The notes under the pieces: model-generated | The model's database searches: none | The model's input: only the letters and a program-made list of their open reading frames with translations | Told to the model about the DNA's origin: nothing | In this document: positions 34,086 through 39,712 of the stretch, one piece after another | Layout of the letters: each line of letters starts with the position of its first letter | Position numbering within the stretch: position 1 is the stretch's first letter | Made by a program: the position numbers and the translations under genes | From: Epithemia pelagica | Taxonomy: Eukaryota; Protista; Bacillariophyta | Length of the DNA stretch: 64,000 nt | Assembly: GCA_946965045.2 (NCBI GenBank) | Contig: OX337231.1 | Location: 3,224,001 to 3,288,000, forward strand | Direction of reading: 5' to 3'

Positions 34086-35133
34086 TTACCATTGTCCCAA
34101 GTCACCAAAGGGGCCATTTTGCTGCGAAAACTTGTCGAATGAGTTGCCCGAAGATCCATGCCGTGCCGGTGCTCTCTGTTGTTGCGGCGGAGGTTGTTGC
34201 TGGTGGTGGACCTGTTGATGTGGAGGATAAGAGGGACTGGCTGCAGGTGGTGCCGCCATACCCAATAGGTCGGCATGGTGGTGATGACCATTGGTTGGGG
34301 CATGGCCAGTGGATCCAAAATCACCCAATAGGTCTCCCCCACCGGCTCCTGCAGCGACCCCCGGACCTAAGTTGGGAGGAGAGGACATGTGCATGTTTGG
34401 CTGTGCCTGTGCTGGCGAGGGGCCACCAAAAATATCGATTGGCGTCTCCGCTTTCGGTGGCACGGGTGCAGTTGCTGCCGGATGAGGCTTGTGATGTGGC
34501 TGAGCTGGTGCTTGAGATGGAGTTGCCGCGGGCCGACGTTGAAAGTCTTCGTCGTCATCAAAATCTTCATCATCGTCGATACCAACGCGAGTGACTTTGG
34601 CAATTATTGTAGATTGCCATGTTGGAACAGGTTGGCGATCGTCCACACAGTCCATCCAAACTCCAAATTGACCCTTCTCACGGTCTGCACCTGGAGTAAG
34701 GGGTGTTTTGAATCGAAAATGATATCGGCCAGGAATAGGAAATGCTTGTTTTATCTGACCAAGCGTCGGAGCCGCGCCCTGGTGGCGAGGTTTCGGGGCT
34801 AGGAAGACATTAGGTTGTGACTCCGTATCTCCATCTTCTGGGATGAAATATCTACCGTCGATTTGCGGCCCGAAAATTAGCCCCAATCGATATACAGCAG
34901 TAGAACAAACAAATAAATGATGAACAAAGAATGTCAGATATGGTCAAGTGGCAATGACACACGGTCTTTCCACCGAAACCGAATTGTGGGTCGGTGATTC
35001 CTGCATTGATTATCTCGCTGTTTCCAAATTCATTCTCCATCATCAGATAAAGAATCAAACTGTTAACGGACTTAATCTAAATATCGCTGAGAAATGGCCA
35101 AGGCAAATCACTTCCTTACCGAACAGCCGCCAT
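34086..35133 (-). CDS. DIX-domain protein with Pro/Gln/His-rich disordered tail; exon 1 35120-35133, intron 34852-35119
   Basis: Spliced N-terminus MAAVRYFIPED; PTLGQIKQAFPIPGRYHFRFK...VWMD...PVPTWQSTIIAKV matches the DIX pattern. Confidence 0.75.
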
Positions 35134-35612
35134 GGTGATTGGAAGGTGGTCCTGCTTCCGTTGCGTGATAGACGACACACGATTTGACCAGTAAACGTGC
35201 TTTCCAAAGAAAAAATGGGACTACTATTGTTTGTATAGTACATGACTCAACGGATCGAAAAGTGAATCACTATAGATTCTATTGTATAACCCATTGTACT
35301 ATACCTTAATATGTACAATGCGCACGTGCCACAATTTCGCGTGAACCCAAATGCATGCCGCGCTCTCTTTTGTTTGCGCGGGCCAAGTCTCCGCCTCTTC
35401 GATCGCTCCCCTTCTCCTTTCCATTGCCATTGTCATCACGAAATTGGCCCCTTCCGTCTCATTCGTCGTTTGCGGACCTCCATTGGACGAGGCCAAAGAA
35501 GCATCATCGCAGCCGAGAAACAGATTGTTCCAGGCTTGCTGTGGTCTCCACCATTTCTGTCACCAGGACATCCCAACGTGATTTTTTAGATCGTCTTCGT
35601 TCAGATCCCACC

Positions 35613-38392
35613 ATGAGTCGAAGAAACAAGAGCTATCTAAAGCATCATCCTCACAACAATGACGGGCTGCGCTTGGAGAAAACGCCTGTGAAAAAGGTAT
35701 GTTCAATCAGTGGTATTCAAGAAAACGGATCGTAGAAACGAAGAGCCAGTGCAAATATTCTCTTACATCCTTGTTCTCACACTTATTTTGTCCGTTCATC
35801 GATCGACAGTACTTTCCCGACAAGGGCTGGGTGAAGGGCGTCGTTGTTTCCTGTAAGATGCGTTCCAGACCCGAGAACAGCACGGGGGCTGTGGATGACT
35901 CCATTATTCCTTCTGAATTGAAGTACCAAGTGCGATACAGCAATGGCACGACAGAAGACTACCCACACTATGTGTTGATGGAGCTCATTGTGTTTGCATT
36001 GGTGGAAGTTGGCTCCCACGTGGTGATTTACTCGTACGAAATGGATCGACATTTTCACTGTGTCGTGAAAAAGGTGGATGATTCCAAAACCACCAATATC
36101 CATGCCTCATTCGAAACCACGCGCTCTGATTGGATTGATTTGAGGAGATTCAAGTTTCAGATCATTTCACCAAAGAGAATGCCCAATCTGCTTTTTCCAG
36201 ATTCTCTCTATCAGTTGTTCAACACTCAAAGAAAAGAACTGGTGCATCAAGGCACTCAAACGACAGAAAAGCTTGGACTCAGTCAATCCTCACGGCCGTC
36301 TCCCGAGCAACGACAGGACCAGTCAACGCAAACAGATGTACGAAAGCACGATCAATCGACACAAACGACCCAGACCAAACGAGACTGTTCAACACAAACA
36401 ATAGAAGCAATACAAACAAAACAAACAGAAAAGAAGCATATATCAACACAAACCAGGGATAGTAATAGTAACCGGGATCAGTCGACACAAACAGTGGAAT
36501 CCAAACGAGATCAATCCACACAAACAGTTGAGAAGAAAATGACACAGGATCAATGCGTTCAAACAAACAACAAAGCTCAGCAACATCAAACAACACAAAC
36601 AAACAACAAAACTCTACAAAATCAAACAACGCAAACATTGGCACAATCGAGACGGTCAGAAGCAACTCAGACATGTCTTGAACTCGGAAACCATCAAGCC
36701 ACACAGACGGGATGTGATTGGCAGCGCGACCAAATCACTCAAACGGTTTTCGAAAATAAGGCTCAGTCCACGCAAACATTGCAAACAGTGACAAAGACAC
36801 AGCATACACAAACATCTCAAACAATAACAAAGACACAGCATACACAAACATCGCAAACAACAACAAAGACACAGCATACACAAACATCCGTGGAAACGAG
36901 ACAGGAGCAAGCAGCGCAAACAAGTCAATCTTTCATTAGTATGGAAGAGAAGGAAACTCAAACTATCCAGGCGACATCCCCAACAAGCAACTCCTCGCTG
37001 CAAGAGGTTCAAACCTCCGACGAAACACAACATAAGTCGACCAAAGCAGAGGTACAAGGGACATCACGTCGTGCCCAACGAAAGAGTCCAGGCAAGCGTG
37101 GTGCCAAGTTTGATACCAGAACGCGTCGAGCTCCATCAGCGGAAGCAGAGGAACTTCTAGATTCGGAAGATGAAGGAGATGCATCAGACAAGGGCAAGGC
37201 TGATGATATCGTTTTGTTTGACTCTTTGACGGAAGATGCATCTCAAGAGGAAGAAGGTGAATCCTCTAAATCCTCCACACCATCGAATGGTCCACTTCTT
37301 GTTCTAAAGTCTCCCCCACTGGCATCAGTAAAGAAAAATACGCGACTTGCAATTCTTTGGGATATGGACGAAGAATATTACGAGGCAACTGTTTTGGAGA
37401 TTCGAAAATACAAGTCTCGTACCATTGCTTATCTAGAGTATACTCAAGACACCTTCAGAGAATGGGCGGCGCTAGGGGATCGAGAATTTTATATCCTAAG
37501 CGACTTTATGGCATACGAAAAGTATCTGAACGATCAAAGAATCGGATGTCTTCCATCTGAAAATATTAGAAAGATCAAGAATGACGAGGAGCAAGAGCGT
37601 GCCTACGGAAGGCAACAGTATGAATGGATTCGCGATCCCTTCACTCGTATCGAGATACCTTTGGACACGACGAGCAATGCCGACTTGTATGCGGCTCATC
37701 TTAAGTCCATCAAAGCGGTTCGTGTTGGTAGTCGTATCGCTATATGGTGGGTTGCGGAAAAGAGATTCTACAAGGGGAACGTCATTGATGTACGAACAAG
37801 AAAAGGAATTCACCAATATCAAGTGAAGTACGATGACAATGACAAATTATGGGTTAACCTCGAAAAGAACTTTTTCTTCGTGCTCCTTCCTCCCCAGCAA
37901 ACGGCAACTGCCGCCGGGATTGTGGACTGGGGGGCAGAAACTGATGAAGAGGCGAAGGCACCTACGAAAGAGTCGCTTGCGGAGGAATCCCATGAGCCTG
38001 TTGGAAAACCAGACTTGGAGAGCATCCATGTTGGGTCGCAGATTGAGGTCGATGTTTCTTGGAGTAGGCGATATAAAATTGGGACTGTGAAAGACATCAA
38101 ACGAGATGTCAACAAGTTTTTGGTCGCGTTCGAGTTTGGCCATGCGGAGTGGATCTCGTTGGAAGAAGTTGATTTCCGGCTGAGTGGTGTCACATCACAC
38201 GATACTGAACAAACGCAACCAAAGACAGGAAAACGAAAGTCGACAGGTAGACAGTCTACCGGTAGCACGGGGAGTAACAAACGAAGAATCTCTTCGAGTT
38301 CAGCTAGGGTACGGAGAGGATCAAACTCGATTGATAAAGTGGACGGGGCAAACGCCCGAGATTCCAAACGGAAGCGGTCCCCCCGGAGCTAA
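35613..38392 (+). CDS. Multi-Tudor-like-domain protein with central TQT repeat array; intron 35697-35809
   Basis: About five Tudor/SH3-like modules (e.g. VGSRIAIWW...FYKGNV...YQVKYDDNDKLWVNL), about 18 TQT motifs, basic NLS-like C-terminus. Confidence 0.75.
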
Positions 38393-38842
38393 CATAGTTT
38401 ACCACTGTTGGGCAATTGCCGAGCAACAATTGTTGCTCCTTGGAATCATCATGGCAATGAACGAACAGTTTACTCCCTCTTCTCTGTCGTTGTGGTAACA
38501 AACTCCTTTGTTTTGGAGCTGCAATACAAAGGCAGCGTCGAGTATGTAGGTTGTAGAAGCCACAAGAGCAGTCTTAGATTTCGAAGGTTGGAATTCACTT
38601 GTCAGAAACAAACATTAAAATTTTGTGTTTGAACAGAAGTAGCACTACCTAGGAGTAGTCCCCTCGTTTCATAGTATTACCTGAAGGCATAGTGTGGCAA
38701 GTGGCAAGCCATAATTTCGACCCCTCAGTCAATCCAAAAACAGTTTTGCGCAAGTTCTTGAGACATGTTTGGCAAGGACTGATGCCGCCCATCGAATCCT
38801 ATGTCAAGGTGACCAGAATCCGTTCGCTCAAACACCTAGTAC

Positions 38843-39712
38843 CTAGTCGTCATCCACGGACTTGCCTTCGCGACGCTGTTGCTCTTTGTACAGCTCATTG
38901 ATATCCTGACCTTCCAATTGTTTCTGAATATCAGCCATTTCACTTTCCGTCGGTGCCCGAAGATCTTCTTGACTGGGTGACTGGATTTCTGGCATGACTG
39001 GGGTCCCATCATCATTTCTCAATGTACGAAATCCTTCTTCACCGCCTTCGTACATTTCGCCTTGAAATCCCATTAGCATCGATTTGAGTCCATCCGCCCC
39101 CTCTACTTCGCGATTCATTTTCTCCATTACAACGTCCGGTCGATTGTACGCAACGTCCATCTCCGAATCACCGGGGGCAATCCAAATGTCCAACGACGCT
39201 CGACTGGGAAACAACTCAATCGGTCGTAAATGAGCTGCATGCGTCTCGATCAGATTCCATTGTCGACTGACCGCCTGGGCCGGTGAAACATCACTGACAC
39301 GAGCAATTTTGCCCACAAACCAAAAGACGCTAGACTTGGGTTCGTGCACATAGACATCGTTGGTCAATTCTTTGCCAGCCGCCTCACGAATGGCCACGAA
39401 GTTCTTATTCTGGCGCATGACATTGCGGGGCAAGTATTTCATGTCTGGCTTCACTGGGGGTCCATCCAACGGCTCCAAAAGCTCGTCTTCATTCACTTCA
39501 TCGATCCAATCTCTGCTTTGGTGGAGTGCTCCATGTACCCGTCTTGCCGCTGGAAATGGTGGACCACTGGTGCGCCCTGACCCAAACCGCCTTCCACCGC
39601 AGCTACGCTCGATTTTATGCAGAGGACCATGAATGCTAAAGCCATGGCAGCCAGAAACAATGAAGAGGAGAACATAATGTAGTGCAATCATGGAGAATAT
39701 CATCATTGTCAT
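38843..39712 (-). CDS. Plastid-targeted protein of unknown function
   Basis: Signal peptide ending GCHG-FSI; well-formed globular core DVYVH...FWFVGKIA. Confidence 0.7.
   Translation of the reverse strand: MTMMIFSMIALHYVLLFIVSGCHGFSIHGPLHKIERSCGGRRFGSGRTSGPPFPAARRVHGALHQSRDWIDEVNEDELLEPLDGPPVKPDMKYLPRNVMRQNKNFVAIREAAGKELTNDVYVHEPKSSVFWFVGKIARVSDVSPAQAVSRQWNLIETHAAHLRPIELFPSRASLDIWIAPGDSEMDVAYNRPDVVMEKMNREVEGADGLKSMLMGFQGEMYEGGEEGFRTLRNDDGTPVMPEIQSPSQEDLRAPTESEMADIQKQLEGQDINELYKEQQRREGKSVDDD

Follow-up and report, generated by a model that had tools for sequence, protein, structure and literature searches.

The stretch of diatom DNA studied here (contig OX337231.1, positions 3,224,001 to 3,288,000; 64,000 nucleotides, referred to as the window) carries on its + strand a two-exon gene (28 + 860 codons) for a multi-Tudor protein of 888 residues, a probable chromatin reader. 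In this protein, five modules that are predicted to fold as Tudor barrels flank a disordered array of 18 TQT motifs. An earlier note on this DNA proposed that the array is a ladder of anchor sites for the dimerization hub LC8 (DYNLL), which would couple the reading of methyl marks to LC8-driven dimerization or to the sensing of LC8 levels. The gene and its features, in order of position, are:

35613..35696, + strand: exon 1, 28 codons, from translation; its final 11 residues are the first strand region of Tudor module 1
35664..35992, + strand: Tudor module 1, interrupted by the intron, with a disordered loop insertion and a partial aromatic cage, from the equivalent model of the ortholog P0002
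35697..35809, + strand: intron of 113 nucleotides, GTATGT...CAG, which splits Tudor module 1
35810..38392, + strand: exon 2, 860 codons and the stop codon, from the open reading frame and a contig of run X4
35993..36202, + strand: Tudor module 2, more conserved than any other part of the protein, with S, F and F at the positions of W616, Y623 and Y641 of RDM15 and without the acidic pair
36254..37015, + strand: candidate LC8-binding array, disordered, with 18 TQT plus VQT, SQT, AQT and IQT variants, mostly 11-13 residues apart
36311..36531, + strand: 33-nucleotide (11-codon) direct-repeat family, five copies, 66-83% identical
36560..36637, + strand: 36-nucleotide tandem repeat, 2.2 copies
36758..36888, + strand: 36-nucleotide (12-codon) tandem repeat, about three copies, 83-92% identical, the most recent expansion
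37016..37327, + strand: disordered linker, mixed basic/acidic (charge-hydropathy), poorly conserved among orthologs
37328..37501, + strand: Tudor module 3, aromatic triad W, Y, Y kept and acidic pair replaced; predicted local distance difference test score (pLDDT) of the model 79-91
37502..37711, + strand: inter-module segment, 70 residues, conserved in all orthologs, partly helical (a prediction partly of low confidence)
37712..37894, + strand: Tudor module 4, RDM15 type, cage for mono-methyl-lysine complete (W, Y, Y, D, D)
38018..38194, + strand: Tudor module 5, fold kept, degenerate cage V, K, F
38195..38389, + strand: basic tail, serine-rich, with K/R clusters resembling nuclear localization signals

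The long open reading frame (ORF) of this gene itself runs from 35699 to 38392. The ATG at 35613, the sole ATG within 35451-35615, lies in a different frame and is followed by 28 codons up to the GTATGT at 35697, and with the AG at 35808-35809 as acceptor the long frame resumes at 35810. Unspliced read-through from 35613 meets a stop after 40 codons. In P0002, the ortholog from Epithemia clementina, the residues equivalent to exon 1 are fused in frame. Contigs of four public runs (X1 to X4, all from one study) were compared with the region, and in run X4 a contig of 3034 nucleotides spans 35451-35694 and 35808-38597, skipping 113 nucleotides with GT..AG ends. This contig has the length and shape of a spliced mRNA and is good but not formal proof of transcription, because the type of run X4 is not on record. 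The span 35613-38392, taken as coding in the earlier note, is indeed coding, although not as one ORF, since the 113-nucleotide GT..AG intron at 35697-35809 interrupts it; the two-exon model is backed by the spliced, transcript-like contig. Two minus-strand ORFs under the array (36279-36704 and 36656-37057), which read as a C/L/F-rich mirror image of the A-rich repeat, were rejected because the GT..AG intron and the orientation of the contig match the + strand gene. In the searches described below, the exons were used one by one; module 1 was examined through the intact ortholog P0002.

Exon 2 contains exactly 18 TQT motifs, of which the first begins at 36254 and the last at 36956 (ending at 36964). 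Five to six variant anchors are also present, namely VQT (36557 and 37007), SQT (36815 and 36851), AQT (36914) and one IQT, and these extend the array to 37015. The count of about 18 TQT with VQT and AQT variants in the earlier note is therefore exact for the TQT motifs, and its spacing of 11-13 residues is found in 13 of the 23 spacings when all anchors are counted. The array is rich in the residues of the motif (23% T and 21% Q in 250 residues). When these 250 residues were shuffled, 2.7 +/- 1.6 TQT were obtained, with a maximum of 10 in 20,000 shuffles, versus the 18 observed. The third residue is also nearly fixed: the array has 22 TQ, followed by T in 18 cases. By charge-hydropathy, a test of composition only, the array falls on the disordered side, as had been proposed, with 13% hydrophobic residues, 22% charged residues and only 3 prolines in 265 residues.

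Part of the array is built from direct DNA repeats. The 33-nucleotide repeats mentioned in the earlier note are present as a family of five copies, but the two 36-nucleotide families had escaped it. Among the 18 TQT, nine distinct codon spellings are used, indicating that the older units held the peptide while silent sites drifted, which suggests that the TQT motifs are under selection as protein. Of the threonine codons in the array, 41 of 58 are ACA. A feature search of the array in the ESM Atlas gave no usable match. Two other readings of a threonine-rich repeat were considered and rejected. An ice-binding-like beta-helix with 12-residue TxT repeats is at odds with the lack of a hydrophobic or cysteine core, the 22% of charged residues, the irregular spacing in distant orthologs and the setting in a Tudor protein with nuclear-targeting signals. 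Mucin-like repeats are at odds with the low proline content and with an N-terminus that, by eye, does not have the look of a signal peptide.

A further protein, P0001, is 99% identical and represents an allele or a strain variant. It and the contigs of runs X2 to X4 show 19 differences from the window within 35854-38310, which suggests a second haplotype or strain. The contig of run X1 has one of these 19 differences (37583 G>A). Four of the resulting changes lie inside the array and affect no TQT; one of them turns the residue at -3 of a site, counted from the Q of the anchor, from C to H.

Relatives of the protein were found by a word-index search and an exhaustive profile search. Besides P0001, close orthologs are P0002 (ACA910_000815 of Epithemia clementina) and P0004, and more distant full-length orthologs are P0005, P0006 and P0007; P0008 is a fragment. 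The comparison of repeat number between diatoms that the earlier note had suggested gives 18 TQT in the window protein, 21 in P0004 and 34 in P0002, with a period common to the three: spacings of 11-12 residues make up 31/37 in P0002 and 15/20 in P0004. In P0002 and P0004, the flanks of the motifs have drifted apart, and the young repeat units are particular to each lineage. The distant orthologs are without long arrays and keep 4-12 islands of the form [I/V/M/S/T/C/F]-Q-T, such as KSIQTE, AGIQTD, KGMQTE, RGIQTE, KSVQTD and KESQTD. Across the orthologs, the motif is thus kept while its surroundings drift, and its Q-T core is under selection. QT is enriched over shuffled sequences in all three distant proteins (12 vs 3.1 in P0005, where 12 was reached in 0/20,000 shuffles; p=0.001 in P0006; p=0.02 in P0007). 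QT is followed by D or E at 8 of the 12 sites in P0005 and at all 4 in P0007, and at most sites of the distant orthologs Q is preceded by I, V, M, C, F or G. These islands and the enrichment of QT point to [I/V/M/S/T]-Q-T-[D/E] as the ancestral conserved feature, which one lineage, that of Epithemia and this species, expanded into a regular TQT ladder. As the earlier note supposed, the system is undescribed: no paper on this protein and nothing on LC8 clients in diatoms was found in the searched literature, and the sole named ortholog, P0002, is annotated as 'hypothetical protein'.

The modules on both sides of the array were modeled with AlphaFold. For the N-terminal pair, residues 30-176 of P0002 were aligned with six orthologs, and the model (mean pLDDT 78.9) gave Foldseek matches that are all tandem Tudor: UHRF1, SETDB1, BAHCC1 and 53BP1. 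In structure alignments, modules 1 and 2 match the 53BP1 tandem Tudor with Z 6.2-6.7 over 104-109 residues, and module 2 matches the Tudor of RDM15 (7de9_A) with Z 8.4 and a root-mean-square deviation (rmsd) of 1.9 Å over 58/58 residues. The C-terminal model (window 37289-38200) contains three five-stranded barrels (pLDDT 75-90) with low-confidence linkers between them. Module 3 reaches Z 7.2 to the trypanosome Tudor 6if4_A and Z 7.8 to a PWWP domain, module 4 reaches Z 9.2 to the RDM15 Tudor (rmsd 1.8 Å, 58/58 residues, 31% identity), and module 5, which P0006 and P0007 do not have, reaches Z 8.4-8.9 to the Tudor domains of PHF19 and PHF1. In the models, all five flanking modules fold as Tudor barrels, and the arrangement of two N-terminal and three C-terminal Tudor-like modules in the earlier note is borne out by the models and structure searches. 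Its proposed Pfam check gave a more limited result. When the N- and C-terminal pieces were searched, only module 4 reached the threshold (Tudor-knot, 21.9 bits vs a cut-off of 20.8); this module also matches 7de9_A by sequence (E 1e-4). The other Pfam matches were sub-threshold families of the Tudor clan or noise (DUF5334, DUF2442), and module 3 had no sequence match in the PDB.

The Tudor of Arabidopsis RDM15 reads H3K4me1 through W616, Y623 and Y641 together with D643 and D645, and its E647 binds H3R2 (PMC8184781). In the cage alignment, module 4 retains all five of these residues for mono-methyl-lysine (Kme1) binding, and the cage is kept in all six orthologs that cover the module, with Y623 replaced by F in P0005 and P0006; P0008 ends before it. 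The residue corresponding to E647 is a leucine in module 4, indicating that the target peptide may differ. The cage is partial in modules 1 and 2, and module 3 has the three aromatics only. Module 5 is probably not a methyl-lysine reader, because V, K and F occupy its three aromatic positions. The aromatic-cage check called for earlier thus comes out well for module 4 and for the triad of module 3, but not for modules 1 and 2 or for module 5, where the cage is lost. The segment between modules 3 and 4 (37502-37711) has no Pfam match and could be a candidate self-association or partner-binding element. The last 65 residues contain 28% K+R, in line with the basic tail that had been noted, and the K/R clusters suggest nuclear import through this tail.

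About 270 multi-Tudor paralogs (275 relatives in the representative library) match module 4 best, and among the matches listed none has at least two TQT. The paralogs form a large unannotated family with 2-8 RDM15-type Tudor barrels per protein (WW...YY.G...YDDGD.EW). In one paralog, P0003, islands of the form E-T-I-T-[P/L] and E-T-V-S-P recur in a disordered stretch and could represent another kind of short motif.

The rules for LC8 recognition have been compiled by Jespersen et al. 2019 (PMC6607443). The anchor has buried T, V or I at -1 and +1 and Q at 0; P, D and E are favored and hydrophobic residues disfavored at +2; -2 is not a bulky aromatic; -3 has a large side chain; -4 is polar and often D; -5 has a slight positive bias; and there is no internal proline. 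The anchor triplet T/V/I-Q-T/V is present throughout the array, in the 18 TQT and in the VQT, SQT and IQT variants. Among the 18 TQT sites, K or R is found at -5 in 10, D, H or T at -4 in 14, and S, T, H or A at -2 in 15, and no proline lies within the motifs. Positions -5, -4 and -2 and the absence of proline therefore agree with these rules in part, while -3 (Q in 14/18) and +2 fit less well. Individual sites resemble proven binders: RDCSTQTI resembles RDCSTQTE of AMOT, KTQHTQTS resembles NTQHTQTC of fly ASCIZ, QDQSTQTD resembles QDSSTQTD of SPAG5, and KEKSIQTE of the distant ortholog P0007 resembles KSIQIQTE of the Mokola virus P protein.

LC8Pred-type scoring, as proposed in the earlier note, was replaced by a rough substitute, two log-odds flank matrices built from hand-tallied Table S4 counts, whose thresholds are not comparable with those of LC8Pred. 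On the binder-vs-background score, binders reached 5.1 +/- 2.3, non-binders -1.2 +/- 4.5, random sequences -6.1 +/- 4.4 and the arrays 0.6-1.0. On the binder-vs-non-binder score, binders reached 4.5 +/- 3.2, non-binders -4.6 +/- 3.6 and the arrays 1.1-3.5, with 16 of the 23 window sites in the binder range; the gap between binders and non-binders is inflated in both cases, because the training sets were scored on themselves. On this rough score of our own, the arrays lie between the two groups, and the sites appear to be much above random, nearer to binders than to non-binders, and on average weaker than validated single sites. It has been reported for KANK1 and ASCIZ that weak sites are made effective by close spacing. 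In its triplet, disorder and conservation, the protein resembles a multivalent LC8 client, whereas its flanks fit only partially.

Several observations weigh against LC8 binding. Q at -3, a large side chain, occurs in 4/79 listed binders vs 4/32 non-binders; V, I or L, which are disfavored, occupy +2 in about 40% of the sites; and only 6 of the 23 sites in the window fall within the binder range on the binder-vs-background score. Some of the regularity of the array is inherited rather than selected, because part of it is young DNA repeat. In addition, none of the four runs is labelled RNA, including the run with the spliced contig. The availability of LC8 is supported by the survey of Wickstead and Gull, in which LC8 was present in all 24 eukaryotic genomes, whatever their dynein content, including those of the diatoms Thalassiosira pseudonana and Phaeodactylum tricornutum (PMC2239267); the literature reports LC8 for these two other diatoms only, and in this genome an LC8 gene is presumed.

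The repeats and the imperfect flanks also allow the array to be read as a fast-evolving, repeat-expanded, low-complexity spacer without a specific partner, in which slippage of 33- and 36-nucleotide units spreads the TQT passively and the region acts only as a flexible tether between the Tudor sets, or there as a polar tract prone to form condensates. This explanation would account for the direct DNA repeats, the overuse of ACA (41/58), the wide differences in copy number among species (18, 21 and 34) and the intermediate flank scores. It is nevertheless considered unlikely, as the older, diverged units keep an exact TQT in nine synonymous spellings, the third-residue T after TQ is nearly invariant, x-Q-T-[D/E] is enriched in distant orthologs without recent repeats, and the preferences at -5, -4, -3 and -2 are position-specific, which is unexpected for neutral sequence. 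With 22 TQ in 250 residues, the array is also far over the usual definition of an S/T-Q cluster, so that it could be an ATM/ATR target whose phospho-threonines dock FHA or BRCT proteins, in a DNA-damage mediator like 53BP1, Rad9/Crb2 or the TQXF repeats of MDC1. Tudor domains with S/T-Q clusters are the pattern of 53BP1 and Crb2, a sub-threshold Pfam match to the Crb2 Tudor (Tudor_3, E 0.007-0.012) was obtained, and the two readings could coexist, as LC8 and S/T-Q sites overlap in ASCIZ. Yet the distant orthologs mostly have I, V, M, C, F or G before Q, leaving Q-T as the conserved core; the T after Q, which the kinases do not require, is as conserved as the T before it; and Pfam finds no BRCT or FHA domain in the protein. 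A role as an S/T-Q cluster is for these reasons rated as quite improbable, and the x-Q-T-[D/E] core looks like an LC8-type anchor rather than an ATM/ATR site.

Slightly less probable again is that the x-Q-T-[D/E] islands are read by another partner, either through acidophilic (CK2-type) phosphorylation of the T, which would create docking sites, or through a diatom-specific protein. In its favor, D or E usually comes after the T in P0005 and P0007, frequently with more acidic residues behind it, much like a CK2 consensus, and the fit of the LC8 flanks is imperfect. Against it, the CK2 feature is not conserved, as most +2 residues in the three TQT-rich species are S, V, I, L or T; the [T/V/I]-Q-T core is conserved, and we know of no alternative reader of this core. 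LC8 binding is the reading that we favor, with a confidence that is only somewhat on the positive side: LC8 dimers are predicted to zip two chains into a rod that would double and space the Tudor readers.

In the mechanism proposed for this LC8 reading, each anchor, as an eight-residue strand, would occupy one groove of an LC8 dimer, and successive dimers would hold two parallel chains in register, resulting in a tightly packed 'beads on two strings' rod. An extended strand rises by about 0.34 nm per residue, so that 11-12 residues span about 3.7-4.1 nm. The period of 11-12 residues minus the eight-residue motif leaves a linker of 3-4 residues. In fly ASCIZ, a linker of 3 residues between two sites gives stable, saturated duplexes with lateral LC8 contacts; complexes are homogeneous with linkers of 6 and 9 residues and heterogeneous with linkers of at least 30. 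The period that dominates in the three species would thus be about the shortest that allows every site to be filled. The rod that 15 LC8 dimers form on KANK1 measures about 53 nm, so that each bead takes up about 3.5 nm (bioRxiv 10.1101/2025.07.16.665182, 2026 preprint), in line with the span of 11-12 residues in extended form. If about 19-20 non-overlapping sites were filled, with one bead per about 3.5 nm, the window protein would form a rod of about 65-85 nm (about 130 nm in Epithemia). The dimerized protein would present ten Tudor barrels per complex, and weak methyl-lysine contacts would gain avidity through module 4, with its RDM15-type Kme1 cage, and module 3, with its aromatic triad, like the effect of LC8 on 53BP1. 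The rod would also keep the N-terminal and C-terminal sets of readers at a fixed distance.

A bolder version of this mechanism, which is speculative and judged unlikely, is that the protein is an LC8-stiffened chromatin ruler. Zipping of two chains by about 20 LC8 dimers, or about 36 in Epithemia clementina, would create a rigid rod of about 70 nm, or about 130 nm in Epithemia, that holds the tandem- and triple-Tudor reader sets at a defined distance. Species would tune the length of the rod by gaining or losing units of 11-12 codons, and its assembly would be governed by the supply of free LC8. If true, the protein would be the highest-valency natural LC8 client and would form the first LC8 rods that organize chromatin spacing.

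Several known systems share parts of this design; the functional logic would follow 53BP1, and the physical logic would follow the rods of Nup159 and KANK1. In 53BP1, which the earlier note rightly cited as a precedent, a tandem Tudor is combined with three LC8 sites that raise chromatin recruitment; both proteins have Tudors that read, or may read, methyl-lysine next to LC8 sites, which in the diatom protein are candidates, and its N-terminal tandem superposes on that of 53BP1. 53BP1 differs in having only three LC8 sites, a trimeric oligomerization domain, a ubiquitin-dependent recruitment motif and BRCT repeats. A Pfam scan of the whole exon-2 protein found no BRCT repeats or other extra elements of 53BP1, and for this reason the diatom protein is not regarded as a 53BP1 ortholog. 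In ASCIZ (ATMIN), with 11 sites in human and 7 in fly, a multivalent TQT array likewise lies in a disordered region rich in Q and T, and fly ASCIZ shares the 11-residue period (3-residue linker) and the near-identical motif NTQHTQTC. The 11 human sites had been cited as a precedent; the number holds, but ASCIZ is no longer the valency record, which passed to KANK1 with its 15 LC8 dimers. N-terminal zinc fingers accompany the LC8-binding S/T-Q domain of ASCIZ, whose mixture of long and short linkers gives a heterogeneous, sensor-like occupancy; the diatom protein instead has Tudor domains and uniform short linkers that would favor saturated rods. No C2H2 zinc finger of the ASCIZ type was found in the Pfam scan, and the diatom N-terminus is a tandem Tudor. 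The protein belongs neither to the 53BP1/Crb2 family (no BRCT) nor to ASCIZ (no zinc finger). The LC8-level sensing offered as one function in the earlier note found no support; the Pfam scan was without a zinc finger or other DNA-binding domain, and this, with the uniformly short linkers, makes ASCIZ-like sensing unlikely.

The L2 linker of KANK1 is also a long disordered region with many close LC8 sites, short linkers and cooperative weak sites. These sites are mostly weak and non-canonical (TST, VNT, IGC) and about 17 residues apart, whereas the diatom proteins carry 18-34 TQT, which are canonical, with a period of 11-12 residues. KANK1, a cortical adaptor, has no Tudor domains and no sequence homology to the diatom protein, and its LC8 binding is experimental, while that of the diatom protein is predicted. 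In yeast, the evenly spaced sites of Nup159 form with Dyn2 a rigid stacked LC8 rod that dimerizes the client; Nup159 has five sites vs 18-34, is located at the nuclear pore and has no homology. Arabidopsis RDM15 (PDS5C-type, PDB 7DE9) is matched by module 4 at W616, Y623, Y641, D643 and D645, but has a single Tudor and no TQT array.

If LC8 binds, the 18-34 canonical and evenly spaced TQT sites would give this family a higher valency than any natural LC8 client known so far, and the orthologs would form a clean natural system for relating linker length and site number to the length and stiffness of LC8 rods. The 53BP1 principle, in which oligomerization by LC8 boosts the reading of a weak mark, would then extend to another eukaryotic lineage and to an RDM15-type Kme1 Tudor, and a first handle on a large unannotated multi-Tudor family would be gained. 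If LC8 does not bind, the conserved x-Q-T-[D/E] islands would still indicate an undescribed short linear motif.

The gene is flanked by three predicted genes or ORFs. Downstream, a minus-strand ORF of 289 residues (window 38843-39712) has an N-terminal hydrophobic stretch and no Pfam match, and is called as a gene on a near-identical ENA contig. For the next downstream gene, on the + strand from about 40017 onward (L001:7187-8562), the gene table of that contig lists a TLC ATP/ADP-transporter domain (PF03219). Upstream, a minus-strand ORF of 266 residues (window 34086-34886) contains a DIX domain (PF00778, E 7.9e-10, 38.9 bits vs a cut-off of 22.2) followed by a His/Pro/Gln-rich tail. The best-known DIX proteins are Dishevelled and Axin of animals and the SOSEKI polarity proteins of plants.

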